Shown in pieces: positions 114 to 27,137 of a stretch of 64,000 bases of DNA; position 1 is the stretch's first letter; the number at the start of each line of letters is the position of its first letter. The translations under genes and the position numbers were made by a program. Source of the DNA: Neoechinorhynchus agilis (Eukaryota > Animalia > Acanthocephala); contig JBMGUZ010000005.1 in assembly GCA_051530055.1 (NCBI GenBank), forward strand, positions 1-64,000. Reading direction: 5' to 3'. The notes beneath the pieces were generated by a model that was not told the DNA's origin, searched no databases, and saw only the letters and a program-made list of their open reading frames with translations.

Positions 114-165
114 TGAGGGTAACATCTCAGAGGCATGAACCCTGCAGCTCCTATCGCCCGCCCTC
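114..165 (-). tRNA. trnM: mt tRNA-Met (CAT)
   Basis: Anticodon arm CAGGG-TTCATGC-CTCTG; acceptor GAGGG/CCCTC. Confidence 0.7.
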
Positions 166-438
166 AAAAAATTCTCTCATTTACCGTGAAAAGTTGGCAC
201 ACACCAAAAACCAGCTCAAAAAAAACTTTTTAAAAAAAACGAGTTTTTTTTAACAGTATATTTTTTTATGAATGTCTGTTTTTAACGCACTAATAATTTA
301 TTAAAAAAATTTTATTTTTAAAATTTGAAAAAAATTTACACTAAATTGACCTTTTGACCCCTAAATCGGCATCATGAATATAAATACTTATAGAAAAATT
401 AGAAAAAATTTCTCTTAATTCACTGCTACTTTGCACAC
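166..438. other. mitochondrial non-coding region between trnI and trnM
   Basis: AT-rich with A/T homopolymer runs, no ORF; position matches the acanthocephalan second NCR. Confidence 0.55.
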
Positions 439-478
439 ACCCTCAGCCAGTTTTGACATCAACAAAAAAAATAGAGAG
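439..478 (-). tRNA. trnI: mt tRNA-Ile (GAT), apparently armless (~40 nt)
   Basis: Anticodon arm TTTTG-TTGATGT-CAAAA; acceptor CTCTC/GAGGG; starts immediately after the nad1 stop. Confidence 0.6.
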
Positions 479-2444: not shown

Positions 2445-2445
2445 C

Positions 2446-2495
2446 CATCAAAAATCTTAGACCCCCAAAGCCCATATTTAAATAAACTTTTTGAT
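2446..2495 (-). tRNA. trnP: mt tRNA-Pro (TGG)
   Basis: Anticodon arm TGGGC-TTTGGGG-GTCTA at 2458-2474; ends approximate. Confidence 0.6.
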
Positions 2496-2555
2496 GTAAA
2501 CAACAGATATTTGAAACTTAAATCCAACTCATCCCATCTGACATTTGTTTAATTA
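2496..2555 (-). tRNA. trnL2: mt tRNA-Leu(UUR) (TAA)
   Basis: Anticodon arm TTGGA-TTTAAGT-TTCAA at 2511-2527; ends approximate. Confidence 0.6.
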
Positions 2556-2561
2556 ACACAT

Positions 2562-4058: not shown

Positions 4059-4095
4059 CTCTAATCACCAAATCACACCTCATAAAAACAACCCC
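4059..4095 (-). tRNA. trnH: possible highly reduced mt tRNA-His (GTG)
   Basis: 37-nt gap between nad4 and nad5 containing a GTGTGAT loop with a weak stem; expected position. Confidence 0.3.
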
Positions 4096-5417: not shown

Positions 5418-5495
5418 TAACCCTGCCACTAAAACCCTAATTCTTTGACCTGCAAGCCACCCCTGGAAGAAACCACTTCTACCACTAAAATTAAC

Positions 5496-5687
5496 CTAAC
5501 CAAAGAACTTTAAAACCACTAAACACAACCTGACAGACAAAGAACCCACCCCAAAGACCAATAAAGAACCAAAAAAGGTAACTAAAACGCCCAAAACAAT
5601 AACCTCTATAGAGATAAAAACAGACAACAGCCTCATAGCCCTAAACATCATATATAACCCCAAACAAAACACCACAACAAAGTTCAA
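5496..5687 (-). CDS. nad4L: NADH dehydrogenase subunit 4L
   Basis: Short hydrophobic ORF (LSVFISMEV) between trnS2 and nad4; somewhat short (63 aa). Confidence 0.7.
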   Translation of the reverse strand: MNFVVVFCLGLYMMFRAMRLLSVFISIEVIVLGVLVTFFGSLLVFGVGSLSVRLCLVVLKFFG

Positions 5688-5730
5688 TAAGCTATCTTCA
5701 AAATAACCCCCTCCGGCTTCTTTGCCACCC
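5685..5730 (-). tRNA. trnS2: mt tRNA-Ser(UCN) (TGA)
   Basis: Anticodon arm GTTAT-TTTGAAG-ATAGC at 5691-5707; ends approximate. Confidence 0.55.
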
Positions 5731-5734
5731 CAGA

Positions 5735-5778
5735 CACACCTAACAGCTTAACTACAAAATAAGCCCGCTCATGCCATT
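5735..5778 (-). tRNA. trnT: mt tRNA-Thr (TGT)
   Basis: GCTTA/TAAGC stem around a TTTGTAG loop at 5746-5764; ends approximate. Confidence 0.5.
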
Positions 5779-5825
5779 TTAACCCTAGTCTACGAAAAAA
5801 ACTCGTGCAAAACACCTGAAATAAA
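5779..5825 (-). tRNA. trnE: mt tRNA-Glu (TTC)
   Basis: Anticodon arm AGTTT-TTTTCGT-AGACT at 5787-5803; ends approximate. Confidence 0.55.
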
Positions 5826-5868
5826 CCGAGTAACAAACCTCCTAGCACAAAAAACTATCAATCTTACT
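5826..5868 (-). tRNA. trnK: mt tRNA-Lys (TTT)
   Basis: TAGT-TTTTTGT-GCTA at 5843-5857; expected order V-K-E-T-S2. Confidence 0.45.
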
Positions 5869-5925
5869 CTTTGAGACAACCTGCTTAATGTAAATAAGCC
5901 ATTTTATTCCAACTCCCCCCAAGAT
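5869..5925 (-). tRNA. trnV: mt tRNA-Val (TAC)
   Basis: Anticodon arm GCTTA-TTTACAT-TAAGC at 5883-5899; ends approximate. Confidence 0.6.
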
Positions 5926-6283
5926 AATATATATACATAACATCTCAGAATATGTTACCCTCACCTATAATGTACTACCCCTAATCATATACCCCTATAG
6001 AGAGGGATTCCCATACACTAAACTGACTATCTCTCTTCTTTTTATATATTTTTTTTAATCCGAGATACACACTGGTGTGGTTAGTATTATTATCCTTATA
6101 TCAGCCCCATATATAAGCATAGAAGACTTTACCGCTTCCGGATACTATAAACAACCGCTGCCACTACCCTCTTAATCCTACCCCCATTTAATTTATAGAA
6201 TTAATATTAGGTGTTTTTGTTGTTAGCTCCGCGCTAAAAACATTATCTTCTTCAATCTTACAAATTTTTTGTACAAAAATTAA
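5926..6283. other. mitochondrial non-coding (control-like) region between trnW and trnV
   Basis: No gene; AT runs and short hairpins; position matches the acanthocephalan first NCR. Confidence 0.6.
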
Positions 6284-6344
6284 CGAAAGCCGCTTTAAAC
6301 GCGCCTCAAGTCTTGAAAACTCGTAGTCATATAACCTAGACTTC
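6284..6344 (-). tRNA. trnW: mt tRNA-Trp (TCA)
   Basis: Anticodon arm CGAGT-TTTCAAG-ACTTG; follows the nad3 stop. Confidence 0.7.
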
Positions 6345-6668
6345 CTATAGCGATCAATCGATTCTCCCGATTCACCACTCTCAAATAGTACCAAGTACAA
6401 AGACCCATAAGATCAAAGAAAACTCTAACAAAAACACCCTTCTAGAAGGAATAAGCATTGGCCTAAAAATCAATAGCACTAGCTCAAGGTCTATTAACAA
6501 AAATAACAGACTTAGAATAAAAAATCGTAAAGAAAAATACAGTCCTTTACAGACCATCCGATTTATGCCACACTCGAAAGTTTTCACCCTTCCGAGCTCT
6601 GGCAACGAACGAATAAATAAAATCATACTAGCTAAGACAAAAACCGCAGATATGATAACTATAAACAA
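6345..6668 (-). CDS. nad3: NADH dehydrogenase subunit 3
   Basis: FECG, FSLRFF and DLELVL; in code 5 ends GTIWEWWIGSIDWSL-TAG at 6345-6347. Confidence 0.93.
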
Positions 6669-6670
6669 AT

Positions 6671-7210
6671 CTAGGATCTATATAGCACCAATAAAGACAC
6701 ATAAATATAACCCTGTAAATAACAGACTAAGCACTCTAAAAGCAATACGCTTAGAACTCCTAACATTACAATGAAACTCATGGTTGAGCTAAAAAACAAC
6801 AATATAGCAAACAACACATGCCCCCTTGAGATATTAACCCCCAATCGGACGCCTAAAGTCAAAGGACGAACCGCCCACCTCACTGCCTCTAAAATAGGCA
6901 TAATAAACATGAATGCCCCCTCCAAACCAGCAGGTAAAAAATGTCTTACTAAACAACCAAACCCGATGTTAGAAAACAAAACCACCAAAGAAAACACCCA
7001 CAAAATAAAACTCACACACAAAATGCACCCCATGTGCATCGTGTAACAGGACCCCAGCAATAGGCCAGACACATTAACCATAATTAACGCTAACATAAAA
7101 CCAACCAACGCCACCCTTTTGGGGGAGGTAGAGGGCTGCATACCCCCTGTGCTTAAAGGCAAAACAAAAAACGGTACACACGACATCAAAAACAGAACCA
7201 AAACTATCAA
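6671..7210 (-). CDS. atp6: ATP synthase F0 subunit a
   Basis: RPLTLGVRLGVNIS.GH and LECLVCYLQGYIY; TTG start, TAG stop. Confidence 0.93.
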   Translation of the reverse strand: MIVLVLFLMSCVPFFVLPLSTGGMQPSTSPKRVALVGFMLALIMVNVSGLLLGSCYTMHMGCILCVSFILWVFSLVVLFSNIGFGCLVRHFLPAGLEGAFMFIMPILEAVRWAVRPLTLGVRLGVNISRGHVLFAILLFFSSTMSFIVMLGVLSVLLLECLVCYLQGYIYVSLLVLYRS

Positions 7211-7320
7211 ACCAGCCCACTAAAACTGCCACCCCTGAAAGAACCCCTGGGGGAACAAGCCGCCCAAGTAGAACACACGTAAATTAAAACCCATAACACA
7301 ACAATCAATATAAGAACCAT
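7204..7320 (-). CDS. atp8: putative ATP synthase F0 subunit 8 (38 aa)
   Basis: ATG...TGA TAG in code 5: MVLMLIVVLWVLIYVCSTWAACSPSGSFSGGSFSGLVW. Lies between trnD and atp6 with a 7-nt TTGATAG overlap; lacks MPQL. Confidence 0.55.
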
Positions 7321-7362
7321 TAGGGGGACCGCCGAGGGCTAGACACACCCTTAAAACCCCTA
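7321..7362 (-). tRNA. trnD: mt tRNA-Asp (GTC), apparently armless (~42 nt)
   Basis: Anticodon arm AGGGT-GTGTCTA-GCCCT; acceptor TAGGGG/CCCCTA. Confidence 0.65.
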
Positions 7363-7365
7363 AAC

Positions 7366-7596
7366 CTAGAACGACCGTATGCAAACCCCGTCCTTAGACA
7401 TCCTAAACCTAATAAAAACAAACCCCGCAGCAACTAACACCCTCAGCAGCCCCAAAAACACCCCCACCGATTGAAGCCTTTCCCCTAAAACAGTGTAACT
7501 CAATATGGCCTCTTTAGAAGACCTAGCCCACCTTGATCAGATAAAAACCCCCAAGATAAAATTAAAAAAAGAGCCACCTAACGAAGACCAAAGGTT
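7366..7596 (-). CDS. nad6: NADH dehydrogenase subunit 6, 3' part (cut by the satellite junction)
   Basis: 76 open codons in code 5 ending ...GFVFISFSMSKDGVCMRSF-TAG; expected position upstream of trnD. Confidence 0.7.
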
Positions 7597-10500
7597 CCGT
7601 TTGATGGAATTTTGTAGGGAAAGGACGATTATAAACGGTTAGGCATTAACCTGGAACGGCCCTAGTATCTCTTTATGAGAAAGCTCTTGCCACCCGTTTG
7701 ATAGAATTTTGTAGGGAAAAGGACGTTATAAACGGTTGAGCATTAACCTGGCACGGAGAATTCTTCTCGTAAAAGCCAAAAAGAAGGTGGTCAATTCCTC
7801 CTCAGATCTAAGGCCAATTTCCATTCAGAACGCCCTAGTATCTCTTTATGAGAGAGCTCTTGCCACCCGTTTGATGGAATTTTGTAGGGAAAAGGACGTT
7901 ATAAACGGTTGAGCATTAACCTGGCACGGAGAATTCTTCTCGTAAAAGCCAAAAAGAAGGTGGTCAATTCCTCCTCAGTTCTTAGGCCAATTTCCACTCA
8001 GAACGCCCTAATATCTCTTTATGAGAAAGCTCTTGCCACCCATTTGATGGAATTTTGTAGGGAAAAGGACGTTATACACGGTTGAGCATTAACCTGGCAC
8101 GGAGAATTCTTCTCGTAAAAGCCAAAAAGAAGGTGGTTAATTCCTCCTCAGATCTTAGGCCAATTTATATTCAGAACGCCCTAGTATCTCTTTATGAGAG
8201 AGCTCTTGCCACCCGTTTGATGGAATTTTGTAGGGAAAAGGACGTTATAAACGGTTGAGCATTAACCTGGCACGGAGAATTCTTCTCGTAAAAGCCAAAA
8301 AAGAAGGTAATTCCTCCTCAGATCTTAGGCCGATTTCCATTCTGAACGCCCTAGTATCTCTTTATGAGAGAGCTCTTGCCACCCGTTTGATGGAATTTTG
8401 TAGGGAAAAGGACGTTATAAACGGTTGAGCATTAAACTGGCACGGAGAATTCTTCTCGTAAAAGCCAAAAAGAAGGTGGTCAATTCCTCCTCAGATCTTA
8501 GGCCAGTTTCCATTCTGAACGCCATAGTATCTCTTTATGAGAAAGCTCTTGCCACCCGTTTGATGGAATTTTGTAGGGAAAAGGACGTTATAAACGGTTG
8601 AGCATTAAACTGGCACGGAGAATTCTTCTCGTAAAACAAAAGAAGAATTGGTCAATTCCTTCTCCAACTCTTGAAAACCCGAACCTCCATTCAGAACGCC
8701 CTAGTATCTCCTTATGAGAGCTCTTGCCACCCGTTTGATGGAATTTTGTAGGAAAAGGACGTTATAAACGGTTGAGCATTAACCTGGCGATTCTTCTCGT
8801 AAAAGCCAAAAAGAAGGTGGTCAATTCCTCCTCAGATCTTAGGCCAATTTCCATTCAGAACGCCTTAGTATCTCTTTATGAGAAAGCTCTTGCCACCCGT
8901 TTGATGGAATTTTGTAGGAAACAGTACGTTATAAACGGTTGAGCATTAACCTGGCACGGAGAATTCTTCTCGTAGAAGCCAAAAAGCAGGTGGTCAATTC
9001 CTCCTCAGATCTTAGGCCGATTTCCATTCTGAACGCCCTAGTATCTCTTTATGAGAGAGCTCTTGCCACCCGTTTGATGGAATTTGGCAAGGAAAAGAAC
9101 ATTATAAACGGTTGAGCATTAACCTGGCACGGAGAATTCTTCTCGTAAAAGCCAAAAAGAAGGTGGTCAATTCCTCCTCAGATCTTAGGCCAATTTCCAT
9201 TCAGAACGCCCTAGTATCTCTTTATGAGAGAGCTCTTGCAACCAGTTTGATGGAATTTTGTAGGGAAAAGGACGTTATAAACGGTTGAGCATTAACCTGG
9301 CACGGAGAATTCTTCTCGTAAAAGCCAAAAAGAAGGTGGTCAATTCCTCCTCAGATCTTAGGCCAATTTCCATTCAGAACGCCCTAATATCTCTTTATGA
9401 GAAAGCTCTTGCCACCCATTTGATGGAATTTTGTAGGGAAAAGGACGTTATAAACGGTTGAGCATTAACCTGGCACGGAGAATTCTTTTCGTAAAAGCCA
9501 AAAAGAAGGTGGTCAATTCCTCCTCAGATCTTAGGCCAATTTCCGTTCAAAGGAACACCCTAAGTCTCTTTATGAGAGAGCTCTTGCCACCCGTTTGATG
9601 GAATTTTGTAGGGAAAAGAACGTTATAAACGGTTCAGCATTAACCTGGCACGGAGAATTCTTCTCGTAAAAGCCAAAAAGAAGGTGGTCAATTCCTCCTC
9701 AGATCTTGGGCCAATTTCCATTCAGAACGCCCTAGTATCTCTTTATGAGAGAGCTCTTGCCACCCGTTTGATGGAATTTTGTAGGGAAAAGGACGTTATA
9801 AACGGTTGAGCATTAACCTGGCACGGAGAATTCTTCTCGTAAAAGCCAAAAAGAAGGTGGTCAATTCCTCCTCAGATCTTAGGCCAATTTCCATTCAGAA
9901 CGCCTAGTATCTCTTTATGAGAGAGCTCTTGCCACCCGTTTGATGGAATTTCTTATGGAAAAGGACGTTATAAACGGTTGAGCATTAACCTGGCACGGAG
10001 AATTCTTCTCGTAAAAGCCAAAAACAAGGTGGTCAATTCCTCCTCAGATCTTGGGCCAATTTCCATTCAGAACGCCCTAGTATCTCTATATGAGAAAGCT
10101 CTTGCCACCCGTTTGATGGAATTTTGTAGGGAAAGGGACGTTATAAACGGTTGAGCATTTACCTGGCACGGAGAATTTTTCTCGTAAAAGCCAAAAAGAA
10201 GGTGGTCAATTCCTCCTCAGATCTTAGGCCAATTTCCATTCTGAACGCCCTAGTATCTCTTTATGAGAGAGCTCTTGCCACCCGTTTGATGGAATTTTGT
10301 AGGAAGGGACGTTATAAACGGTTGAGCATTAACCTGGCACGGAGAATTCTTCTCGTAAAAGCCAAAAAGAAGGTGGTCAATTCCTCCTCAGATCTTAGGC
10401 CGATTTTCATTCGTTTCTAGTATCTCTTTATGAGAGAGCTCTTGCCACCCGTTTGATGGAATTTTGTAGGGAAAAGGACGTTATAAACGGTTGAGCATTA

Positions 10501-13500
10501 ACCTGGCACGGAGAATTTTTCTAGTAAAAGCCAAAAAGAAGGTGGTCAATTCCTCCTCAGATCTTAGGCCAATTTCCATTCAGAACGCCCTAGTATCTCT
10601 TTATGAGGAAGCTCTTGCCACCCGTTTGATGGAATTTTGTAGGGAAAAGGACGTTATAAACGGTTGAGCATTAACCTGGCACGGAGAATTCTTCACGTAA
10701 AAGCCAAAAGAAGGTGGTCAATTCCTCCTCAGATCTTAGGCCAATTTCCATTCAGAACGCCCTAGTATCTCTTTATGAGAGAGCTCTTTGTAATTTGATG
10801 GAATTTTGTAGGGAAAAGGACGTTATAAACGGTTGAGCATTAACCTGGCACGGAGAATTCTTCTCGTAAGCCAAAAAGAAGGTGGTCAATTCCTCCTCAG
10901 ATCTTAGGCCAATTTCCATTCAGAACGCCCTAGTATCTCTTTATGAGAGAGCTCTTGCCACCCGTTTGATGGAATTTTGTAGGGAAAAGGACGTTGTAAA
11001 CGGTTGAGCATTAACCTGGCACGGAGAATTCTTCTCGTAAAAGCCAAAAAGAAGGTGGTCAATCCCTCCTCAGATCTTAGGCCAATTTCCATTCAGAACG
11101 CCTTAGTATCTCTTTATGAGAAAGCTCTTGCCACCCATTTGATGGAATTTTGTAGGGAAAAGGACGTTATAAACGGTTGAGCATTAACCTGGCACGGAGA
11201 ATTCTTCCAGTAAAAGCCAAAAAGAAGGTGGTCAATTCCTCCTCAGATCTTAGGCCAATTTCCATTCAGAACGCCTTAGTATCTCTTTATGAGAAAGCTC
11301 TTGCCACCCATTTGATGGAATTTTGTAGGGAAAAGGACGTTATAAACGGTTGAGCATTAACCTGGCACGGAGAATTCTTCTCGTAGAAGCCAAAAAGTAG
11401 GTGGTCAATTCCTCCTCAGATCTTAGGCCAATTTCCATTCAGAACGCCTTAGTATCTCTTTATGAGAAAGCTCTTGCCACACGTTTGATGGAATTTTGTA
11501 GGGAAAAGGACGTTATAAACGGTTGAGCATTAACCTGGCACGGAGAATTCTTCTCGTAAAAGCCAAAAAGAAGGTGGTCAATTCCTCCTCAGATCTTAGG
11601 CCAATTTCCATTCAGAACGCCCTAGTATCTCTTTATGAGAAAGCTCTTGCCACCCGTTTGTAGGAATTTTGTAGGAAAAAGGACGTTATAAACGGTTGAG
11701 CATTAACCTGGCACGGAGAATTCTTCTCGTAAAAGCCAAAAAGAAGGTGGTCAATTCCTCCTCAGATCTTAGGCCAATTTCCATTCAGAACGCCCTAGTA
11801 TCTCTTTATGAGAGAGCTCTTGCAACCCGTTTGATGGAATTTTGTATGGAAAAGGATGTTATAAACGGTTGAGCATTAACCTGGCACGGAGAATTCTTCT
11901 CGTAGAAGCCAAAAAGTAGGTGGTCAATTCCTCCTCAGATCTTAGGCCAATTTCCATTCAGAACGCCTTAGTATCTCTTTATGAGAAAGCTCTTGCCACA
12001 CGTTTGATGGAATTTTGTAGGGAAAAGGACGTTATAAACGGTTGAGCATTAACCTGGCACGGAGAATTCTTCTCGTAAAAGCCAAAAAGAAGGTGGTCAA
12101 TTCCTCCTCAGATCTTAGGCCAATTTCCATTCAGAACGCCCTAGTATCTCTTTATGAGAAAGCTCTTGCCACCCGTTTGATGGAATTTTTGGGAAAAAGG
12201 ACATTTATAAACGGTTGAGCATTAACCTGGCACGGAGAATTCTTCTCGTAAAAGCCAAAAGAAGGTGGTCAATTCCTCCTCAGATCTTAGGCAATTTTCC
12301 ATTCAGAACGCCCTAGTATCTCTTTATGAGAAAGCTCTTGCCACACGTTTGATGGAATTTTGTAGGGAAAAGGACGTTATACACGGTTGAGACTTAACCT
12401 GGAACGGAGAATTCTTCTCGTAAAAGCCAAAAAGAAGGTGGTCAATTCCTCATCAGATCCTAGGCCAGTTTCCATTCTGAACGCCATAGTATCTCTTTAT
12501 GAGAAAGCTCTTGCCACACGTTTGATGGAATTTTGTAGGGAAAAGGACGTTATACACGGTTGAGCATTAACCTGGCACGGAGAATTCTTCTAGTAAAAGC
12601 CAAAAAGAAGGTGGTCAATTCCTCCTCAGATCTTAGGCCAATTTCCATTCAGAACGCCCTTAGTATCTCTTTATGAGAGAGCTCTTGCCACGTTTGATGG
12701 AATTTTGTAGGAAAAGGACGTTATAAACGGTTGAGCATTAACCTGGCACGGAGAATTCTTCTCGTAAAAGCCAAAAAGAAGGTGGTCAATTCCTCCTCAG
12801 ATCTTAGGCCAATTTCCATTCAGAACGCCCTAGTATCTCTTTATGAGAAAGCTCTTGCCACCCGTTTGATGGAATTTTTTAGGAAAAAGGACGTTATAAA
12901 CGGTTGAGCATTAACCTGGCACGGAGAATTCTTCTCGTAAAAGCCAAAAAGAAGGTGGTCAATTCCTCCTCAGATCTTAGGCCAATTTCCATTCAGAACG
13001 CCTTAGTATCTCTTTATGAGAAAGCTCTTGCCACCCGTTTGATGGAATTTTTTAGGAAAAAGGACGTTATAAACGGTTGAGCATTAACCTGGCACGGAGA
13101 ATTCTTCTCGTAGAAGCCAAAAAGTAGGTGGTCAATTCCTCCTCAGATCTTAGGCCAATTTCCATTCAGAACGCCTTAGTATCTCTTTATGAGAAAGCTC
13201 TTGCCACACGTTTGATGGAATTTTGTAGGGAAAAGGACGTTATAAACGGTTGAGCATTAACCTGGCACGGAGAATTCTTCTCGTAAAAGCCAAAGAAGGT
13301 GGTCAATTTCTCACTCAGATCTTAGGCCAATTTCCATTCAGAACGCCTTAGTATCTCTTTATGAAAGCTCTTGCCACCCGTTTGATGGAATTTTTAGGAA
13401 AAAGGACGTTATAAACGGTTGAGCATTAACCTGGCACGGAGAATTCTTCTCGTAAAAGCCAAAAGAAGGTGGTCAATTCCTCCTCAGATCTTAGGCCAAT

Positions 13501-16500
13501 TTCCATTCAGAACGCCTTAGTATCTCTTTATGAGAAAGCTCTTGCCACACGTTTGATGGAATTTTGTAGGGAAAAGGACGTTATAAACGGTTGAGCATTA
13601 ACCTGGCACGGAGAATTCTTCTCGTAAAAGCCAAAAAGAAGGTGGTCAATTCCTCCTCACATCTTAGGCCAATTTCCATTCAGAATGCCCTAGTATCTCT
13701 TTATGAGAAAGCTCTTGCCACCCATTTGATGGAATTTTGTAGGGAAAAGGACGTTATAAACGGTTGAGCATTAACCTGGCACGGAGAATTCTTCTCGTAA
13801 AAGCCAAAATGAAGGTGGTCAATTCCTCCTCAGATCTTAGGCCAATTTCCATTCAGAACGCCCTAGTATCTCTTTATGAGAAAGCTCTTGCCACCCGTTT
13901 GATGGAATTTTTTAGGGAAAAGGACGTTATAAACGGTTGAGCATTAACCTGGCACGGAGAATTCTTCTCGTAAAAGCCAAAAAAGAAGGTGGTCAATTCC
14001 TCCTCAGATCTTAGGCCAATTTCCATTCAGAACGCCTTAGTATCTCTTTATGAGAAAGCTCCTGTTACCTGTTTGATGGAAGTTTGTAGGAAAAGGGCGT
14101 GCCAGGTTAATGCTCAACCGTTTATAACGTCCTTTTCCCTACAAAATTCCATCAAACGTGTGGCAAGAGCTTTCTCATAAAGAGATACTAAGGCGTTCTG
14201 AATGGAAATTGGCCTAAGATCTGAGGAGGAATTGACCACCTACTTTTTGGCTTCTACGAGAAGAATTCTCCGTGCCAGGTTAATGCTCAACCGTTTATAA
14301 CGTCCTTTTTCCTAAAAAATTCCATCAAACGGGTGGCAAGAGCTTTCTCATAAAGAGATACTAAGGCGTTCTGAATGGAAATTGGCCTAAGATCTGAGGA
14401 GGAATTGACCACCTTCTTTTTGGCTTTTACGAGAAGAATTCTCCGTGCCAGGTTAATGCTCAACCGTTTATAACGTCCTTTTTCCTAAAAAATTCCATCA
14501 AACGGGTGGCAAGAGCTTTCTCATAAAGAGATACTAGGGCGTTCTGAATGGAAATTGGCCTAAGATCTGAGGAGGAATTGACCACCTTCTTTTTGGCTTT
14601 TACGAGAAGAATTCTCCGTGCCAGGTTAATGCTCAACCGTTTATAACGTCCTTTTCCTACAAAATTCCATCAAACGTGGCAAGAGCTCTCTCATAAAGAG
14701 ATACTAAGGGCGTTCTGAATGGAAATTGGCCTAAGATCTGAGGAGGAATTGACCACCTTCTTTTTGGCTTTTACTAGAAGAATTCTCCGTGCCAGGTTAA
14801 TGCTCAACCGTGTATAACGTCCTTTTCCCTACAAAATTCCATCAAACGTGTGGCAAGAGCTTTCTCATAAAGAGATACTATGGCGTTCAGAATGGAAACT
14901 GGCCTAGGATCTGATGAGGAATTGACCACCTTCTTTTTGGCTTTTACGAGAAGAATTCTCCGTTCCAGGTTAAGTCTCAACCGTGTATAACGTCCTTTTC
15001 CCTACAAAATTCCATCAAACGTGTGGCAAGAGCTTTCTCATAAAGAGATACTAGGGCGTTCTGAATGGAAAATTGCCTAAGATCTGAGGAGGAATTGACC
15101 ACCTTCTTTTGGCTTTTACGAGAAGAATTCTCCGTGCCAGGTTAATGCTCAACCGTTTATAAATGTCCTTTTTCCCAAAAATTCCATCAAACGGGTGGCA
15201 AGAGCTTTCTCATAAAGAGATACTAGGGCGTTCTGAATGGAAATTGGCCTAAGATCTGAGGAGGAATTGACCACCTTCTTTTTGGCTTTTACGAGAAGAA
15301 TTCTCCGTGCCAGGTTAATGCTCAACCGTTTATAACGTCCTTTTCCCTACAAAATTCCATCAAACGTGTGGCAAGAGCTTTCTCATAAAGAGATACTAAG
15401 GCGTTCTGAATGGAAATTGGCCTAAGATCTGAGGAGGAATTGACCACCTACTTTTTGGCTTCTACGAGAAGAATTCTCCGTGCCAGGTTAATGCTCAACC
15501 GTTTATAACATCCTTTTCCATACAAAATTCCATCAAACGGGTTGCAAGAGCTCTCTCATAAAGAGATACTAGGGCGTTCTGAATGGAAATTGGCCTAAGA
15601 TCTGAGGAGGAATTGACCACCTTCTTTTTGGCTTTTACGAGAAGAATTCTCCGTGCCAGGTTAATGCTCAACCGTTTATAACGTCCTTTTTCCTACAAAA
15701 TTCCTACAAACGGGTGGCAAGAGCTTTCTCATAAAGAGATACTAGGGCGTTCTGAATGGAAATTGGCCTAAGATCTGAGGAGGAATTGACCACCTTCTTT
15801 TTGGCTTTTACGAGAAGAATTCTCCGTGCCAGGTTAATGCTCAACCGTTTATAACGTCCTTTTCCCTACAAAATTCCATCAAACGTGTGGCAAGAGCTTT
15901 CTCATAAAGAGATACTAAGGCGTTCTGAATGGAAATTGGCCTAAGATCTGAGGAGGAATTGACCACCTACTTTTTGGCTTCTACGAGAAGAATTCTCCGT
16001 GCCAGGTTAATGCTCAACCGTTTATAACGTCCTTTTCCCTACAAAATTCCATCAAATGGGTGGCAAGAGCTTTCTCATAAAGAGATACTAAGGCGTTCTG
16101 AATGGAAATTGGCCTAAGATCTGAGGAGGAATTGACCACCTTCTTTTTGGCTTTTACTGGAAGAATTCTCCGTGCCAGGTTAATGCTCAACCGTTTATAA
16201 CGTCCTTTTCCCTACAAAATTCCATCAAATGGGTGGCAAGAGCTTTCTCATAAAGAGATACTAAGGCGTTCCAGGTTAATGCTCAACCGTTTATAACGTA
16301 TTTTCCCTACAAAATTCCATCAAACGGGTGGCAAGAGCTTTCTCATAAAGAGATACTAAGGCGTTCTGAATGGAAATTGACCTAAGATCTGAGGAGGAAT
16401 TGACCACCTTCTTTTTGGCTTTTACGAGAAGAATTCTCCGTGCCAGGTTAATGCTCAACCGTTTATAACGTATTTTCCCTACAAAATTCCATCAAACGGG

Positions 16501-19500
16501 TGGCAAGAGCTATCTCATAAAGAGATACTGGGGCGTTCTGAATGGAAATTGGCCTAAGATCTGAGGAGGAATTGACCACCTTCTTTTTGGCTTTTACGAG
16601 AAGAATTCTCCGTGCCAGGTTAATGCTCAACCGTTTATAACGTATTTTCCCTACAAAATTCCATCAAACGGGTGGCAAGAGCTTTCTCATAAAGAGATAC
16701 TAGGGCGTTCTGAATGGAAATTGGCCTAAGATCTGAGGAGGAATTGACCACCTTCTTTTTGGCTTTTACGAGAAGAATTCTCCGTGCCAGGTTAATGCTC
16801 AACCGTGTATAACGTCCTTTTCCCTACAAAATTCCATCAAACGGGTGGCAAGAGCTTTCTCATAAAGAGATACTAGGGCGTTCTGAATGGAAATTGGCCT
16901 AAGATCTGAGGAGGAATTGACCACCTTCTTTTTGGCTTTTACGAGAAGAATTCTCCGTGCCAGGTTAATGCTCAACCGTTTATAACGTCATTTTTCCTAC
17001 AAAATTCCATCAAACGGGTGGCAAGAGCTTTCTCATAAAGAGATACTAGGGCGTTCTGAATGGAAATTGGCCTAAGATCTGAGGAGGAATTGACCACCTT
17101 CTTTTTGGCTTTTACGAGAAGAATTCTCCGTGCCAGGTTAATGCTCAACCGTTTATAACGTCCTTTTTCCTACAAAATTCCATCAAACGGGTGGCAAGAG
17201 CTTTCTCATAAAGAGATACTAAGGCGTTCTGAATGGAAATTGGCCTAAGATCTGAGGAGGAATTGACCACCTTCTTTTTGGCTTTTACGAGAAGAATTCT
17301 CCGTTCCAGGTTAATGCTCAACCGTTTATAACGTCCTTTTCCCTACAAAATTCCATCAAACGGGCGGCAAGAGCTTTCTCATAAAGAGATACTAGGGCGT
17401 TCTGAATGGAAATTGGCCTAAGATCTGAGGAGGAATTGACCACCTTCTTTTTGGCTTTCACGAGAAGAATCCTCCCTCCGTGCCAGGTTAATGCTCAACC
17501 GTTTATAACGTCCTTTTCCCTACAAAATTCCATAAAACGGGTGGCAAGAGCTCTCTCATAAAGAGATACTAGGGCGTTCTGAATGGAAATTGGCCTAAGA
17601 TCTGAGGAGGAATTGACCACCTTCTCTTTGGCTTTTACGAGAAGAATTCTCCGTGCCAGGTTAATGCTCAACCGTTTATAACGTCCTTTTCCCTACAAAA
17701 TTCCATCAAACGGAAGCAAGAGCTCTCTCATAAAGAGATACTAGGGCGTTCTGAATGGAAATTGGCCTAAGATCTGAGGAGGAATTGACCACCTTCTTTT
17801 TGGCTTTTACGAGAAGAATTCTCCGTGCCAGGTTAATGCTCAACCGTTTATAACGTCCTTTTCTCACAAAATTCCATCAAACGGGTGCCAAGAGCTCTCT
17901 CATAAAGAGATACTAAGGCGTTCTGAATGGAAATTGGCCTAAGATCTGAGGAGGAATTGACCACCTTCTTTTTGGCTTTTTACGAGAAGAATTCTCCGTG
18001 CCAGGTTAATGCTCAACCGTTTATAACGTATTTTCCCTACAAAATTCCATCAAACGGGTGGCAAGAGTTTAAGCAATAATGAGATACTAAGGCGTTCTGA
18101 ATGGAAATTGGCCTAAGATCTGAGGAGGAATTGACCACCTTCTTTTTGGCTTTTACGAGAAGAATTCTCCGTGCCAGGTTAATGCTCAACCGTTTATAAC
18201 GTCCTTTTTCCTACAAAATTCCATCAAACGGTGGCAAGAGCTTTCTCATAAAGAGATACTAGGGCGTTCTGAATGGAAATTGGCCTAAGATCTGAGGAGG
18301 AATTCACCTTCTTCTTGGCTTTTACGAGAAGAATTCTCCGTGCCAGGTTAATGCTCAACCGTTTATAACGTATTTTCCCTACAAAATTCCATCAAACGGG
18401 TGGCAAGAGCTTTCTCATAAAGAGATACTAAGGCGTTCTGAATGGAAATTGACCTAAGATCCGAGGAGGAATTGACCACCTTCTTTTTGGCTTTTACGAG
18501 AAGAATTCTCCGTGCCAGCTTAATGCTCAACCGTTTATAACGTCCTTTTCCCTACAAAATTCCATCAAACGGGTGGCAAGAGCTATCTCATAAAGAGATA
18601 CTAGGGCGTTCTGAATGGAAATTGGCCTAAGATCTGAGGAGGAATTGACCACCTTCTTTTTGGCTTTTACGAGAAGAATTCTCCGTGCCAGGTTAATGCT
18701 CAACCGTTTATAACGTCCTTTTCCCTACAAAATTCCATCAAACGGGTGGCAAGAGCTCTCTCATAAAGAGATACTAGGGCGTTCTGAATGGAAATTGGCC
18801 TAAGATCTGAGGAGGAATTGACCACCTTCTTTTGGCTTTTACGAGAAGAATTCTCCGTGCCAGGTTAATGCTCAACCGTTTATAACGTCCTTTTCCCTAC
18901 AAAATTCCATCAAACGGGTGGCAATGGCTTTCTCATAAAGAGATACTAAGGCGTTCCAGGTTAATGCTCAACCGTTTATAACGTCCTTTTCCCTACAAAA
19001 TCTCCATCAAACGGGTGGCAAGAGCTTTCATAAAGAGATACTAGGGCGTTCTGAATGGAAATTGGCTCAAGATCTGAGGAGGAATTGACCACCTTCTTTG
19101 GCTTTTACGAGAAGAATTCTCCGTGCCAGGTTAATGCTCAACCGTTTATAACGTCCTTTTCCCTACAAAATTCCATCAAACGGGTGGCAAGAGCTCTCTC
19201 ATAAAGAGATACTAGGGCGTTCTGAATGGAAATTGGCTCAAGATCTGAGGAGGAATTGACTACCTTCTTTTTGGCTTTTACGAGAAGAATTCTCCGTGCC
19301 AGGTTAATGCTCAACCGTTTATAACGTCCTTTTCCCTACAAAAATTCCATCAAACGGGGTGGCAAGAGCTTTCTCATAAAGAGATACTAGGGCGTCTCCA
19401 GGTTAATGCTCAACCGTTTATAACGTCCTTTTCCTACAAAATTCCATCAAACGGGTGGCAAGAGCTTTCTCATAAAGAGATACTAGGGCGTTCTGAATGG

Positions 19501-22500
19501 AAATTGGCCTAAGATCTGAGGAGGAATTGACCACCTTCTTTTTGGCTTGTACGAGAAGAATCTCTCGTGCCAGGTTAATGCTCAACCGTTTATAACGTCC
19601 TTTCCCTACAAAATTCCAGGCATCAAACTGGTGGCAAGAGCTCTCTCATAAAGAGATACTAGGGCGTGCCAGGTTAATGCTCAACCGTTTATAACGTCCT
19701 TTTCCCTACAAAATTCCATCAAACGGGTGGCAAGAGCTTTCTCATAAAGAGATACAAGGGCGTTCTGAATGGAAATTGGCCTAAGATCTGAGGAGGAATT
19801 GACCACCTTCTTTTTGGCTTTTACGAGAAGAATTCTCCGTGCCAGGTTAATGCTCAACCGTTTATAACGTCCTTTTTCCTAAAAAATTCCATCCAAACGG
19901 GTGGCAAGAGCTTTCTCATAAAGAGATACTAGGGCGTTCTGAATGGAAATTGGCCTAAGATCTGAGGAGGGATTGACCACCTTCTTTTTGGCTTTTACGA
20001 GAAGAATTCTCCGTTCCAGGTTAATGCTCAACCGTTTATAACGTCCTTTTCCCTACAAAATTCCATCAAACTGGTGGCAAGAGCTTTCTCATAAAGAGAT
20101 ACTAAGGCGTTCTGAATGGAAATTGGCCTAAGATCTGAGGAGGAATTGACCACCTTCTTTTTGGCTTTTACGAGAAGAATTCTCCGTGCCAGGTTAATGC
20201 TCAACCGTTTATAACGTCCTTTTCCCTACAAAATTCCATCAAACGGGTGGCAAGAGCTCTCTCATAAAGAGATACTAGGGCGTTCTGAATGGAAATTGGC
20301 CTAAGATCTGAGGAGGAATTGACCACCTTCTTTTTGGCTTTTACGAGAAGAATTCTCGTGCCAGGTTAATGCTCAACCGTTTATAACGTCCTTTTCCCTA
20401 CAAAATTCCATCAAACGGGTGGCAAGAGCTTTCTCATAAATAGATACTAGGGCGTTCAGAATGGAAATTGGCCTAAGATCTGAGGAGGAATTGACCACCT
20501 TCTTTTTGGCTTTTACGAGAAGAATTCTCCGTGCCAGGTTAATGCTCAACCGTTTATAACGTCCTTTTCCCTACAAAATTCCATAAAACGGGTGGCAAGA
20601 GCTCTCTCATAAAGAGATACTAGGGCGTTCTGAATGGAAATTGGCCTAAGATCTGAGGAGGAATTGACCACCTTCTCTTTGGCTTTTACGAGAAGAATTC
20701 TCCGTGCCAGGTTAATGCTCAACCGTTTATAACGTCCTTTTCCCTACAAAATTCCATCAAACGGAAGCAAGAGCTCTCTCATAAAGAGATACTAGGGCGT
20801 TCTGAATGGAAATTGGCCTAAGATCTGAGGAGGAATTGACCACCTTCTTTTTGGCTTTTACGAGAAGAATTCTCCGTGCCAGGTTAATGCTCAACCGTTT
20901 ATAACGTCCTTTTCTCACAAAATTCCATCAAACGGGTGCCAAGAGCTCTCTCATAAAGAGATACTAAGGCGTTCTGAATGGAAATTGGCCTAAGATCTGA
21001 GGAGGAATTGACCACCTTCTTTTTGGCTTTTTACGAGAAGAATTCTCCGTGCCAGGTTAATGCTCAACCGTTTATAACGTATTTTCCCTACAAAATTCCA
21101 TCAAACGGGTGGCAAGAGTTTAAGCAATAATGAGATACTAAGGCGTTCTGAATGGAAATTGGCCTAAGATCTGAGGAGGAATTGACCACCTTCTTTTTGG
21201 CTTTTACGAGAAGAATTCTCCGTGCCAGGTTAATGCTCAACCGTTTATAACGTCCTTTTTCCTACAAAATTCCATCAAACGGTGGCAAGAGCTTTCTCAT
21301 AAAGAGATACTAGGGCGTTCTGAATGGAAATTGGCCTAAGATCTGAGGAGGAATTCACCTTCTTCTTGGCTTTTACGAGAAGAATTCTCCGTGCCAGGTT
21401 AATGCTCAACCGTTTATAACGTATTTTCCCTACAAAATTCCATCAAACGGGTGGCAAGAGCTTTCTCATAAAGAGATACTAAGGCGTTCTGAATGGAAAT
21501 TGACCTAAGATCCGAGGAGGAATTGACCACCTTCTTTTTGGCTTTTACGAGAAGAATTCTCCGTGCCAGCTTAATGCTCAACCGTTTATAACGTCCTTTT
21601 CCCTACAAAATTCCATCAAACGGGTGGCAAGAGCTATCTCATAAAGAGATACTAGGGCGTTCTGAATGGAAATTGGCCTAAGATCTGAGGAGGAATTGAC
21701 CACCTTCTTTTTGGCTTTTACGAGAAGAATTCTCCGTGCCAGGTTAATGCTCAACCGTTTATAACGTCCTTTTCCCTACAAAATTCCATCAAACGGGTGG
21801 CAAGAGCTCTCTCATAAAGAGATACTAGGGCGTTCTGAATGGAAATTGGCCTAAGATCTGAGGAGGAATTGACCACCTTCTTTTGGCTTTTACGAGAAGA
21901 ATTCTCCGTGCCAGGTTAATGCTCAACCGTTTATAACGTCCTTTTCCCTACAAAATTCCATCAAACGGGTGGCAATGGCTTTCTCATAAAGAGATACTAA
22001 GGCGTTCTGAATGGAAATTGGCCTAAGATCTGAGGAGGAATTGACCACCTACTTTTTGGTTTTACGAGAAGAATTCTCCGTGCCAGGTTAATGCTCAACC
22101 GTTTATAACGTCCTTTTTCCTACAAAATTCCATCAAACGGGTGGCAAGAGCTTTCTCATAAAGAGATACTAGGGCGTTCTGAATGGAAATTGGCCTAAGA
22201 TCTGAGGAGGAATTGACCACCTTCTTTTTGGCTTTTACGAGAAGAATTCTCCGTGCCAGGTTAATGCTCAACCGTTTATAACGTATTTTCCCTACAAAAT
22301 TCCATCAAACGGGTGGCAAGAGCTTTCTCATAAAGAGATACTAAGGCGTTCTGAATGGAAATTGACCTAAGATCTGAGGAGGAATTGACCACCTTCTTTT
22401 TGGCTTTTACGAGAAGAATTCTCCGTGCCAGGTTAATGCTCAACCGTTTATAACGTATTTTCCCTACAAAATTCCATCAAACGGGTGGCAAGAGCTATCT

Positions 22501-24593
22501 CATAAAGAGATACTGGGGCGTTCTGAATGGAAATTGGCCTAAGATCTGAGGAGGAATTGACCACCTTCTTTTTGGCTTTTACGAGAAGAATTCTCCGTGC
22601 CAGGTTAATGCTCAACCGTTTATAACGTATTTTCCCTACAAAATTCCATCAAACGGGTGGCAAGAGCTTTCTCATAAAGAGATACTAGGGCGTTCTGAAT
22701 GGAAATTGGCCTAAGATCTGAGGAGGAATTGACCACCTTCTTTTTGGCTTTTACGAGAAGAATTCTCCGTGCCAGGTTAATGCTCAACCGTGTATAACGT
22801 CCTTTTCCCTACAAAATTCCATCAAACGGGTGGCAAGAGCTTTCTCATAAAGAGATACTAGGGCGTTCTGAATGGAAATTGGCCTAAGATCTGAGGAGGA
22901 ATTGACCACCTTCTTTTTGGCTTTTACGAGAAGAATTCTCCGTGCCAGGTTAATGCTCAACCGTTTATAACGTCATTTTTCCTACAAAATTCCATCAAAC
23001 GGGTGGCAAGAGCTTTCTCATAAAGAGATACTAGGGCGTTCTGAATGGAAATTGGCCTAAGATCTGAGGAGGAATTGACCACCTTCTTTTTGGCTTTTAC
23101 GAGAAGAATTCTCCGTGCCAGGTTAATGCTCAACCGTTTATAACGTCCTTTTTCCTACAAAATTCCATCAAACGGGTGGCAAGAGCTTTCTCATAAAGAG
23201 ATACTAAGGCGTTCTGAATGGAAATTGGCCTAAGATCTGAGGAGGAATTGACCACCTTCTTTTTGGCTTTTACGAGAAGAATTCTCCGTTCCAGGTTAAT
23301 GCTCAACCGTTTATAACGTCCTTTTCCCTACAAAATTCCATCAAACGGGCGGCAAGAGCTTTCTCATAAAGAGATACTAGGGCGTTCTGAATGGAAATTG
23401 GCCTAAGATCTGAGGAGGAATTGACCACCTTCTTTTTGGCTTTCACGAGAAGAATCCTCCGTGCCAGGTTAATGCTCAACCGTTTATAACGTCCTTTTCC
23501 CTACAAAATTCCATCAAACGGGTGGCAAGAGCTTTCTCATAAAGAGATACAAGGGCGTTCTGAATGGAAATTGGCCTAAGATCTGAGGAGGAATTGACCA
23601 CCTTCTTTTTGGCTTTTACGAGAAGAATTCTCCGTGCCAGGTTAATGCTCAACCGTTTATAACGTCCTTTTTCCTAAAAAATTCCATCAAACGGGTGGCA
23701 AGCTCTCTCATAAAGAGATACAAGGGCGTTCTGAATGGAAATTGGCCTAAGATCTGAGGAGGAATTGACCACCTTCTTTTTGGCTTTTACGAGAAGAATT
23801 CTCCGTGCCAGGTTAATGCTCAACCGTTTATAACGTCCTTTTCCCTAAAAAATTCCATCAAACGGGTGGCAAGAGCTTTCTCATAAAGAGATACAAGGGC
23901 GTTCTGAATGGAAATTGGCCTAAGATCTGAGGAGGAATTGACCACCTTCTTTTTGGCTTTTACGAGAAGAATTCTCCGTGCCAGGTTAATGCTCAACCGT
24001 TTATAACGTCCTTTTTCCTAAAAAATTCCATCAAACGGGTGGCAAGAGCTTTCTCATAAAGAGATACTAGGGCGTTCTGAATGGAAATTGGCCTAAGATC
24101 TGAGGAGGAATTGACCACCTTCTTTTTGGCTTTTACGAGAATTCTCCGTGCCAGGTTAATGCTCAACCGTTTATAACGTCCTTTTCCCTACAAAATTCCA
24201 TCAAACGGGTGGCAAGAGCTTTCTCATAAAGAGATACTAGGGCGTTCTGAATGGAAATTGGCCTAACATCTGAGGAGGAATTGACCACCTTCTTTTTGGC
24301 TTTTACGAGAAGAATTCTCCGTGCCAGGTTAATGCTCAACCGTTTATAACGTCCTTTTCCCTACAAAATTCCATCAAACGCGTGGCAAGAGCTCTCTCGT
24401 AAAGAGATACTAGGGCGTTCTGAATGGAAATTGGCCTAAGATCTGAGGAGGAATTGACCACCTTCTTTTTGGCTTTTACGAGAAGAATTCTCCGTGCCAG
24501 GTTAATGCTCAACCGTTTATTACGTCCTTTTCCCTACAAAATTCCATCAAACGGGTGGCAAAAGCTTTCTCATAAAGAGATACTAGGGCGTTC
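7597..24593. repeat. 173-bp tandem satellite, ~98 copies, forward to ~14098 then reverse
   Basis: Period measured 7867->8040->8213. Consensus CCGTTTGATGGAATTTTGTAGGGAAAAGGACG...GAGCTCTTGCCAC; no unique spacers. Confidence 0.99.
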
Positions 24594-27137
24594 GATTATA
24601 ATTGCAAGCCCAGTATTTGTTGGACCAAAACTTTTGCATGGGGCATCCTGATGCAAGTTAGCTTTTTTAATTTGGGATGCACAGTACTTAAGACAGCTTG
24701 AGGTAACTGCTCCTCTTGAAAAATGATTGGGAATAGATAAAAATTTGTTTGAGAGATTAAAAAGTTAAGAATTCCATTCCTGGAGATTCAGAAATTCGTG
24801 AAGGGAGCGTTTAATGGCGAAATTGAAAAAAGCTACGGCGAAAACCGGAATCTGCGGCTTAAAGACTTGTCGCTGGATAAGTACCATGTTATCAGATCAT
24901 GATAGCATGCTTCCGATAAATCGCATTGTTTTGCAACTGTAATGCCTTCCTGTCGGTTGGATGGGACATAGCAGATTCGAATTCGCCTCCGCTTCTTCGA
25001 GCTTTAACTAAGAACGAATAGTTGATATTTAGCAAAATTCTGTACTTGAACAACACAGAGTTCGTAAAGATATTCTCAAGCGCCAAGATGGACACTTTTT
25101 TTATAATTTAGATAACATTCAGTAATCGCCGAATGAAGTTGACCCAATGGTGAATGTTTAATATAGTAAAACTAATTGAAGATAATGTTGAAGAAATATT
25201 TATTATTTAACTTTGGGTATTAAGAGCATCGATTGATTGAGATATTAGAAAACGTTTCTGAGAAATCCTGTTCAGGGCAAGAATTTGTTATTGAAAAAGA
25301 GAATGAAATATGGTCGTGCATTTAGAATTGTTCAAGAAATGTTTAACTAGTTGCTTAATTTTTTGGGATTCGGGTGTTTCTTGTGTTTAAAATTTAATGG
25401 CTTTTCACTATACTCGATTTCGAACTTTGGACATAAAAGACGTATAGTTTCGTAAATAAGCGGCTTTCCGATTATGTTATTCGCTTATTCGCATCAAACG
25501 TATTTAATAACCCATATAAAATGCATTCGCTTAAACTTCATTTGTAAGCTAGAAACGTACTCAACGCCCTCAAGGATCAAGAGTTTCTGTTTCAACTTTT
25601 TAATTTTACGTCTATAATTCGACCTTTATAAGTCTTGAAACTAAAATAAGAATGAAGCTTTTAATTATTTGTTATGAAGAGTTTGCCCTTTATACTGTGG
25701 GGAAACACATTTGCGGTTTTATACTAAAAAATAGTAGAAATATCTTCAAGTCTAGCGTTTTCGAAACAGTTTTATCAAAAACGACTTTTTTGCACTAACG
25801 GAGCATTTATGTCCACGTGCATTCGCGTGTTCGACTAATTGAAGAAAGGCAAGGATATTCGCCATGTTGAACTTGATTTCGAAGCGATGTGAGAATTCGA
25901 GTCCATGATTCGTTATTAAGCGATCCATAAAATACGTATGTATTAAACGATAACAACTTCAGGAAACCACCACGTTCTATTCAATGATTGGGCATAGGGT
26001 TTAAGCATCAAAGAACCCAATTGGCGGGAGGGCCTTTACAAGAACCAACCAGAAAAATCATGTACCAACATCCTCTCGACAGGATAATAAATTAATTGAC
26101 TTGTTGAATCAGCTTCAAATCCAAGCCTATCTTCGAAATTAAATCATTTTATTCTTGATTGCCGAATGTGTTTTCGAGGTTTCCATTGCAAGCATTTAAT
26201 CGGTCTTTATACTTAGTGAAAATTCGATGCATTTTGATCCTCGTCGGGCACTGTGCCATCTTTTGCCAAGAAAAAAGGAGTGCCGCGTGACTAAATGCAC
26301 ATTGGAAGATGGCGGATTTATCGAGGGGAGATATGGTATTGTGGAGTGTAGGTTTCGCGGCAGGAACCAACGAAGAATGCAGCCAAGAGCATTATGTTCA
26401 ACTTGTGGAGCTGTTGAAAGATAGGCGACCTTCACTTATAACCAATCAAATTAATTGAGATTCTTGTGAATATTTATATACTTAGAATTTGAATAACTTT
26501 GATTGTATGAAATATTTGTTGCACTTTTTTCTCGCAAATCGTTAATATTTAACGCATCGATGCCTAGGGAGAAACGAACACTGTAAACGGAAGTTAAGAA
26601 AATGAGAAATATGAAATGTAAAAGTGCGATCGACATTTCAATGGCGCTGTAAAAGGGAAGTCCGAATTTAACATTTATGAGCTCACTTCACTTGTTAGAG
26701 ACGTAGATCACATTTAAAGCAAAAATTTGTCGTCGAATCTTTTTTGGTAATATGCAGGGATTTTTTTGCGTCCGAATAAATGCAAATTTTATTTCATTTA
26801 AAGGAGGCTTTAGTTATAACAAGACAGAAAATGCGTTCCAGTGTCCGAAACAATTCGCTAAATGAATGCGCAATTCCTGAGATCTTCACAGATCCAACAT
26901 AATGAAATACAATAAAATGTTTAACTTTGCTTGAAAATTCATCGAGGACTATTAATCGGTGACATTCGCGAATTCCCTCACTGTATACAATTAGATTCTT
27001 AATTTGCACAGACTTTGCTGCATCCGTGGGGGGGGAGGGAATAAAAGATTTTATATCAATCAAAAGTTAGTCTTTTTAGAGTAGTAACTAAACACTAAAA
27101 TCATGACTCTCAAAAACACAAAAAATTAAATTGATGC

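Follow-up and report, generated by a model that had tools for sequence, protein, structure and literature searches.

Within the first 64,000 nucleotides of contig JBMGUZ010000005.1 of the acanthocephalan Neoechinorhynchus agilis (this whole stretch is referred to below as the window), positions 7597-24593 are occupied by a tandem array of about 98 monomer-equivalents of a 173-bp repeat. Our results strongly support the reading of this array as a non-coding satellite that was born from a piece of the second open reading frame (ORF2) of a long interspersed nuclear element (LINE), here called family A, probably in place, inside a truncated copy of that element. The monomer corresponds to an internal segment of the LINE reverse transcriptase (RT), a donor copy carries the same segment once, and a remnant of family A still adjoins the array. 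As far as literature searches show, this is the first satellite characterised for an eoacanthocephalan. The satellite was studied as one array, 15-17 kb long, and the donor comparison covers four loci, L001-L004.

Homology of the monomer to LINE reverse transcriptases

The array was delimited in two ways. Tandem Repeats Finder (TRF) reports 173-bp tandem arrays over 7654-24593 with matches of 91-96%, and a single-monomer blastn query tiles 7597-24593 with no gaps between units (107 high-scoring segment pairs at 86.5-100% identity, mostly 93-99%), in agreement with the coordinates and period given by a first-pass annotation of the sequence. Monomers stand head to tail and are of uniform length within two opposed arms, apart from five 96-nt variants. 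The 87 near-full monomers comprise 61 distinct sequences, with a mean identity to the consensus of 97.4%, and some variants recur (A122G in 27 monomers, C103T in 23). This monomer variation is real and lies beyond what a few copies could give. One reading frame of the monomer, RLSINLARRILLVKAKKKVVNSSSDLRPISIQNALVSLYE(K/R)ALATRLMEFCREKDVIN, spans 57 codons plus two nucleotides, exactly as quoted in the first-pass annotation. The monomer ORF had no match on record, and a 33-mer of the satellite had none in metagenome contigs.

Homology of the monomer to an internal region of a transposable element (TE) is significant by independent approaches. Searched exhaustively with phmmer, 1.84 billion representative proteins gave nine matches to the monomer peptide, with LINE-type proteins at the top: P0121 (91% identity, E 1.8e-22), P0122 (84%), P0123 (72%) and P0124 (59%), together with P0127, which contains an apurinic/apyrimidinic endonuclease (APE) and the start of an RT (E 1.6e-4), and the RT protein P0128 (E 6.7e-4), both at 54%. 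P0121-P0123, as well as P0130, are gene models of the N. agilis assembly GCA_051530055.1. Independently, hhalign matched the monomer with a probability of 99.5% (E 3.8e-22) to an RT profile built from six RT N-terminal regions, from which the donor family had been left out. The Pfam RVT_1 alignment starts inside the monomer-homologous stretch both in the joined RT of a second LINE family in the window (family B; E 1.1e-21) and in P0128 (E 4.9e-30), whereas Pfam matched neither the 58-aa monomer by itself nor the 205-aa in-window ORF, because the segment is too short and too N-terminal.

Judged by this homology, the monomer is a slice of RT motifs 1-2 (fingers) of an APE-type LINE, immediately upstream of the QxGF-type motif, which takes the form CHGF in family B and NCHGF in the donor family. 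This is where the first-pass annotation had placed it, and the profile score bears the placement out. The assignment to APE-type LINEs draws on the two RVT_1 matches and on endonuclease matches in P0127 (Exo_endo_phos, E 8e-5; 22.9 bits, just below the cut-off of 24.5) and P0123 (Exo_endo_phos_2, E 5e-4); the APE region of the in-window element was recognised by eye (GHFND), without a Pfam match. Separately, the monomer peptide also matches P0125, a 328-aa protein built of tandem repeats in which RPLGLKNALAS recurs (E 3e-5, four stretches); the match may reflect a comparable RT-derived repeat of another genome, or chance.

The LINE that lies in the same window was a natural point of comparison. 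This family B element, at about 34600-30975 on the minus strand, carries CCHC knuckles, a region resembling an APE, and RT motifs 3-5, and is broken by several frameshifts. The monomer frame aligns without gaps to its minus-strand ORF at 31835-32005, with 29 of 57 residues identical for the monomer quoted in the first-pass annotation and 28 of 57 for the consensus (Smith-Waterman score 144, against 28 +/- 4.8 in 2000 shuffles; tblastn E 4e-15). The gap-free alignment to 31832-32008 and the 28 identical residues described earlier were thus recovered, as were the many synonymous differences: 20 of the 28 residues common to the consensus and family B are encoded by different codons. The role of parent, by contrast, does not fit this element, which belongs to a different family. 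Because nucleotide identity is 53% over 171 aligned nucleotides and synonymous divergence (dS) is saturated, family B is, by sequence comparison, a distant and anciently diverged homologue of the satellite, not its donor.

A donor LINE family and the origin of the satellite

The high-identity donor LINE that the first-pass annotation had left to be found is family A. At locus L001 (CM121343.1:206646-227823, the locus of P0121), positions 10443-10615 match the satellite consensus at 168 of 173 nucleotides (97.1%), over exactly one monomer length and as a single, non-tandem copy. The edges of homology are abrupt: on the left, ...GAGGATT gives way to GGTTGAGC, and on the right, TTATAAAC gives way to CGAAAC.... 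In the satellite, the founding head-to-tail junction joins ...TTATAAAC directly to GGTTGAGC..., with microhomology of at most 1 nt; the 173-bp length is thus the distance between the two founding breakpoints. The L001 segment sits in a degenerate LINE copy that extends from the APE domain (9497) to the RT C-terminus (about 11470) and carries frameshifts. Other family A copies contain the segment once each, at 83-84% identity in L003 and L004 and 68% in L002, and a search of the four donor-family loci for dimer intermediates found none.

Family A is also present at the array itself. A 380-bp piece of the ORF2 linker between APE and RT directly adjoins the right end of the array (Table 1). This remnant is collinear and co-oriented with the adjacent monomers, and the linker lies upstream of the segment that was amplified. 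The junction is unique, clean sequence: it falls at monomer position 96/97, shows no microhomology, and leaves out about 490 bp of LINE sequence (L001 10047-10538). The L001 copy reaches 160 bp further in the 5' direction than the remnant in the window, which is therefore an independently truncated copy. Together, the donor match and the flanking remnant sustain the earlier proposal that a slice of LINE RT coding DNA was amplified in tandem. The direction of change was from TE to satellite, because the segment consists of RT motifs that are conserved across distant LINE families and dS relative to family B is saturated.

Once in the array, the segment evolved without protein constraint. In 82 non-redundant monomers, substitutions at codon positions 1, 2 and 3 number 114, 92 and 62, and the synonymous share of codon changes (26%) is close to the 24% expected at random. 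Indels occur in 40 of these monomers and the frame is open in 38; 173 is not divisible by three, and stops interrupt both remaining frames. Divergence between LINE families, unlike that between monomers, is strongly constrained. The array is non-coding, and its monomers vary neutrally with regard to the former RT frame.

Table 1. Features of the array and related elements in the window
Feature	Coordinates	Strand	Description
Mitochondrial-type DNA	1..7596	-	atp6, nad3, trnW, trnV, nad4, nad5, trnL2, trnP, cob, nad1; all ORFs open, code 5
Plus arm of array	7597..14100	+	Partial monomer (positions 135-173), 96-nt variant, about 36 full monomers, ends at about position 166 (blastn tiling, TRF, junction sequences)
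Exact inverted duplicate of 11096-13269	14098..16271	-	100% identity, 2174 bp, no gaps (megablast self-comparison, junction view)
Rest of minus arm	16267..24593	-	Block patchwork delimited by 96-nt variants, ends at monomer position 96/97
Family A remnant (ORF2 linker, APE to RT)	24594..24973	-	380 bp, 95.9% to L001 9659-10046 (megablast, blastn; tblastn with P0121 and P0123)
Family B RT motif 1-2 segment	31835..32005	-	Degenerate LINE copy; segment aligned in the first-pass annotation

Internally, the array is not the single uniform head-to-tail run of the first-pass annotation. Its orientation flips at 14098-14100, where a plus arm (7597-14100) and a minus arm (14098-24593) join tail to tail; the plus arm and the inverted duplicate overlap by 2-3 nt (CG), with an 828-bp spacer. 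Blocks are also duplicated within the minus arm, 16267-18611 resembling 22252-24593 (97.5%) and 16611-18956 resembling 19665-22007 (98.9%); a search for a regular higher-order repeat in the array found none, only such irregular block duplications. The non-redundant length is about 14.8 kb, in two opposed arms. Of the earlier statement that the slice was amplified to at least 17 kb, the amplification holds, and the length depends on an assembly with an exact inverted duplicate, other block duplicates and a junction to intact mitochondrial-type DNA.

The five 96-nt variant monomers, at about 7636-7732, 16194-16289, 18879-18974, 19318-19416 and 19589-19687, consist of monomer positions 1-19 joined to positions 97-173, with junction sequences that differ slightly among the five. 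The 77 nt that they lack are flanked by two short direct repeats, GCACG and GAACG. The right end of the array and both ends of the exact inverted copy coincide with the two monomer positions of this deletion (about 19-23 and 96-97), which suggests that the GCACG/GAACG repeats are a breakage or template-switch hotspot, or that they mark an ambiguity of the assembly graph. The exact 2174-bp inverted copy may likewise be a very recent fold-back, or it was introduced by the assembly.

From these patterns we infer an origin in place, the mechanisms of amplification and an order of events. A 173-bp internal ORF2 piece of family A, covering RT motifs 1-2, would have been duplicated head to tail, most probably inside a 5'-truncated family A copy at this locus. 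The processes usual for satellites, namely unequal exchange, slippage during replication and segmental duplication of blocks of several monomers, would then have raised the number of copies to about 100. Later, a recurrent 77-nt deletion between GCACG and GAACG would have produced the 96-nt variants, a deletion of about 490 bp would have trimmed the LINE/array boundary and, if the assembly is right, a microhomology-mediated fold-back would have created the two opposed arms.

Several points weigh against this reading. LINE position 10046 joins monomer position 96/97 out of register, and an origin in place needs a secondary deletion to account for it; a pre-existing array recombined into a LINE copy would look identical. 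The expected 3' LINE flank is absent, the other end of the array being the inversion followed by mitochondrial-type DNA. The donor match at 97% may be to a paralogous region or to a sister genome. Specifically, positions 55892-64000, with an ORF containing a RanBP1 domain (61942-63795), are collinear at 82-93% identity with two other N. agilis loci, L005 (CM121343.1:42489-64243, near the scaffold start) and L006 (on JBMGUZ010000033.1), and this identity makes the window a diverged paralogous block or part of a closely related genome. L005 and L006 are 99.4% identical to each other, and the window ORFs at 61942-63795 and 54474-56111 have no record of their own, the nearest gene models matching them at 89-90%. 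Finally, the assembly may distort the length of the array and the arrangement of its arms.

Assembly, neighbourhood and competing explanations

The left edge of the array meets mitochondrial-type DNA at 7596/7597. This block of at least 7.6 kb runs off the start of the window and has the standard acanthocephalan gene order; its best cob matches are to Eoacanthocephala, at 61-63% only. It is either a very young, large nuclear mitochondrial DNA segment (NUMT) or a chimeric assembly join. The flatworm/echinoderm genetic code was rejected for it, as AAA encodes lysine at a KK in nad5, which we take to be a conserved site, in keeping with the invertebrate code 5. Scans of the window with Rfam and for tRNAs returned nothing, the mitochondrial tRNAs being found solely with the -mt mode of ARAGORN. 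A second, older NUMT at 27773-29332 (+) runs from 3' nad4 to about two thirds of nad5 and lies 3 kb from the right edge of the array; it matches the first copy at 96.6% over 1560 bp, gap-free and in opposite orientation.

For the public N. agilis assembly, about 4 Gb of Oxford Nanopore (ONT) R9.4 reads were combined with Illumina reads from a pool of about 50 worms, using MaSuRCA/Flye and instaGRAAL (PMC12690905). It is an evenly balanced question whether the satellite is real and only its arrangement is artefactual, with the inversion at 14100, the exact 2.2-kb copy and/or the junction with mitochondrial DNA (mtDNA) misjoined from what are really two separate arrays or contig ends. The exactness of the inverted copy, the intact mtDNA block and the hybrid nature of the assembly all suit such a misjoin, as do the ends of the exact copy, which fall at about monomer positions 19-23 and 96-97, where variant junctions make paths ambiguous. 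Conversely, microhomology (CG, ACG) and a spacer are also left by real fold-back or template-switch repair, and the older NUMT 3 kb from the array shows that mtDNA has integrated in this region.

It is rather unlikely that the satellite arose elsewhere and entered the LINE copy by recombination or gene conversion with its homologous segment. Such an entry would account for the out-of-register junction with its missing 490 bp or so and for the missing 3' LINE flank, yet the remnant is collinear and co-oriented with the monomers, its divergence from L001 (95.9% identity) resembles theirs (97.1%), no other arrays are known, and L001-L004 show no invasion.

No function has been demonstrated for the satellite; a role today, if there is one, would be played at the level of DNA, chromatin or RNA. 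As an added role compatible with an origin from family A, the array might be a small-RNA source locus, in which the opposed arms or the 2.2-kb inverted repeat would give rise to double-stranded RNA (dsRNA) or PIWI-interacting RNAs (piRNAs) that silence family A. PIWI, ping-pong piRNAs and clusters of piRNA loci are all present in N. agilis, for which small-RNA sequencing data exist (PMC12256650). The presence of both orientations in one locus, the perfect 2174-bp inverted repeat and a monomer that is about 97% identical to the family A RT would suit this role. The inverted repeat is possibly an artefact, however, and family A copies are already degenerate, with frameshifts in L001, and we hold the role to be improbable, while small RNAs against the parent LINE, as the first-pass annotation envisaged, are plausible given the piRNA pathway of N. 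agilis.

That the assembly created the array itself, or its length, inversion and mitochondrial neighbour, out of a smaller or differently arranged repeat is unlikely. The copy at 14098-16271 is 100.0% identical while the other block duplicates are at 97.5-98.9%, as expected if an edge of the assembly graph was used twice; the left edge adjoins at least 7.6 kb of intact mitochondrial-type DNA, which suits a chimeric join; the public assembly is a hybrid of low-coverage ONT R9.4 and pooled-worm Illumina reads (PMC12690905); and monomer deletions are mildly enriched at homopolymers (56% observed, 38% expected). Against this stand 61 distinct monomers with patterned shared variants, which are impossible to obtain from a few copies, the unique right-hand junction, and a fold-back whose 828-bp spacer and non-integer offset in monomers do not match a simple template/complement read chimera. 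GATC and GANTC sites are absent from all four junctions of the array, those with mtDNA and with the LINE as well as the inversion point and the place where the exact copy ends. A HinfI site (GAATC) does occur at 24974, 0-4 nt from the 5' end of the remnant, and HinfI is one of the Hi-C enzymes of the public assembly; with a chance expectation of about 8%, the site is a weak hint of a scaffolding join. These caveats do not touch the core finding, whose basis is the monomers themselves, the match to the donor and the junction on the right. For genome curators, the exact fold-back and the intact mtDNA joined to a satellite flag a likely problem region.

The monomer length of 173 bp is within the range common for centromeric satellites. 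Acanthocephalans are monocentric, and a study of Acanthocephalus satellites places some of these repeats at centromeres (PMC11758010). That the present array is a functional centromeric or pericentromeric satellite, selected for nucleosome-sized periodicity, is nevertheless very unlikely: it is small (15-17 kb), there is an ORF resembling a pyruvate kinase exon at a distance of 2.5 kb and a RanBP1-domain gene elsewhere in the window, the collinear N. agilis block is within the first 54 kb or so of CM121343.1, pointing to a terminal position, and the monomer length is fully explained by the two founding breakpoints. The centromere or heterochromatin candidacy put forward in the first-pass annotation is thus unsupported.

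Chance resemblance, or the capture of a satellite monomer by a LINE, for which only the short length of the match speaks, is refuted by phmmer, hhalign, the donor match and the codon comparison, with E-values of 1e-22, a segment of RT motifs inside the RVT_1 alignment that is conserved across distant LINE families, and a single copy of it in every LINE copy examined.

The rest of the window contains further repeats and gene fragments. Between the array and the second NUMT, a 157-aa frame at 27141-27611 (-) matches the pyruvate kinase C-terminal domain (PK_C, E 2.8e-14) and represents an exon or gene fragment. A weak GIY-YIG match at 29990-30544 (-) lies beyond the end of the family B ORF2 (E 0.005-0.014, below cut-off) and has paralogues apart from family B at 50164-50443 (+) and 44755-44901 (+). 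These GIY-YIG-like fragments carry a CxxC inside the motif, typical of Penelope-like elements, and the one directly downstream of family B, easily taken for part of that LINE, is best read as a piece of a separate Penelope-like element. Family B itself was considered as a Penelope-like element with a GIY-YIG tail and rejected as such, given its LINE-type ORF2 with an APE-like region, CHGF and YADD. A dispersed repeat of 1.4-1.6 kb occurs at 35526-37147 and 46887-48511 (98.6% between the window copies) and again at L001 14448-15868 and L003 19386-20069 (about 96%); it contains overlapping ORFs of 162-175 aa on both strands, without a Pfam match. An intact 545-aa ORF at 54474-56111 (-) and a 218-aa ORF at 38617-39273 (+), also without a Pfam match, resemble C-terminal parts of another LINE-type ORF2 family, and a short 277-bp tandem repeat (2.5 copies, 77% matches) lies at 53721-54412. 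Telomeric repeats were not found in the window.

Relation to known satellites and significance

Retrotransposon-internal tandem repeats reportedly expand into satellites in Lathyrus. Non-coding TE parts are the more usual source of satellites according to a 2022 review, which describes a common cetacean satellite derived from the 3'-terminal part of L1 and PisTR-A from the 3' untranslated region (3'UTR) of Ogre (PMC9659126). The cetacean satellite, PisTR-A and the Lathyrus repeats followed the same general route as the N. agilis satellite, from a short duplication inside a retroelement to a long array. Their sources are non-coding or hypervariable TE regions, often already repetitive, whereas here the source is the coding sequence of a conserved catalytic domain, with no prior internal repeat in the donor copies examined.

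Satellites derived from ORF2 have also been published, so that the first-pass view of TE satellites as coming mostly from non-coding parts is fair as a tendency and too narrow as a rule. The same review lists PROsat of Phodopus roborovskii and Pvc20 of the harbour seal, both from L1 ORF2, and the chicken HinfI/SCR1 repeat, from the CR1 3'UTR and part of ORF2 (PMC9659126). In these cases, as the review summarises them, the monomer or part of it comes from a non-LTR (long terminal repeat) ORF2 coding region and the direction is from TE to tandem repeat, as here. Unlike in those satellites, a single continuous RT segment makes up the entire N. agilis monomer, its two breakpoints are known to the nucleotide, the donor family has been identified at 97% identity, and a remnant of the parent LINE remains beside the array; the animal that carries it is an acanthocephalan, and no L1 or CR1 membership has been established for the LINE.

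Within the phylum, our literature search found satellites described for Acanthocephalus only and none for Eoacanthocephala. The Acanthocephalus satellites, like the one described here, belong to acanthocephalan genomes and cluster at specific chromosomal sites; they come from Palaeacanthocephala and are documented by read clustering and fluorescence in situ hybridization, and the accessible part of that work gives no TE-coding origin (PMC11758010). The locus is a clear example of a known route to satellites, not a new class of phenomenon.

A more speculative reading connects the opposed arms with host defence. The idea that they act as a self-made small-RNA trap, in which read-through transcription would yield dsRNA or precursors of piRNAs that match the family A catalytic core at about 97%, is a long shot on present sequence evidence. 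If it were true, a coding fragment of the LINE itself, amplified a hundredfold, would have become a host silencer of family A, in a host that keeps PIWI and ping-pong piRNAs and is without Dnmt1 and Dnmt3. Inverted-repeat (hairpin RNA) and dual-strand small-RNA loci made of TE fragments occur in Drosophila and other animals. The N. agilis array resembles them in presenting TE-homologous sequence in both orientations; it differs in being known from its sequence, with an inversion that is possibly an artefact.

Most TE-derived satellites are recognised long after the traces of their origin have vanished. In N. agilis, the birth of a satellite from a transposon is resolved to the base, with founding breakpoints, a donor at 97% and a remnant of the parent element all visible and the monomers diverged by only 2-3%, and the satellite could serve as a cytogenetic marker.

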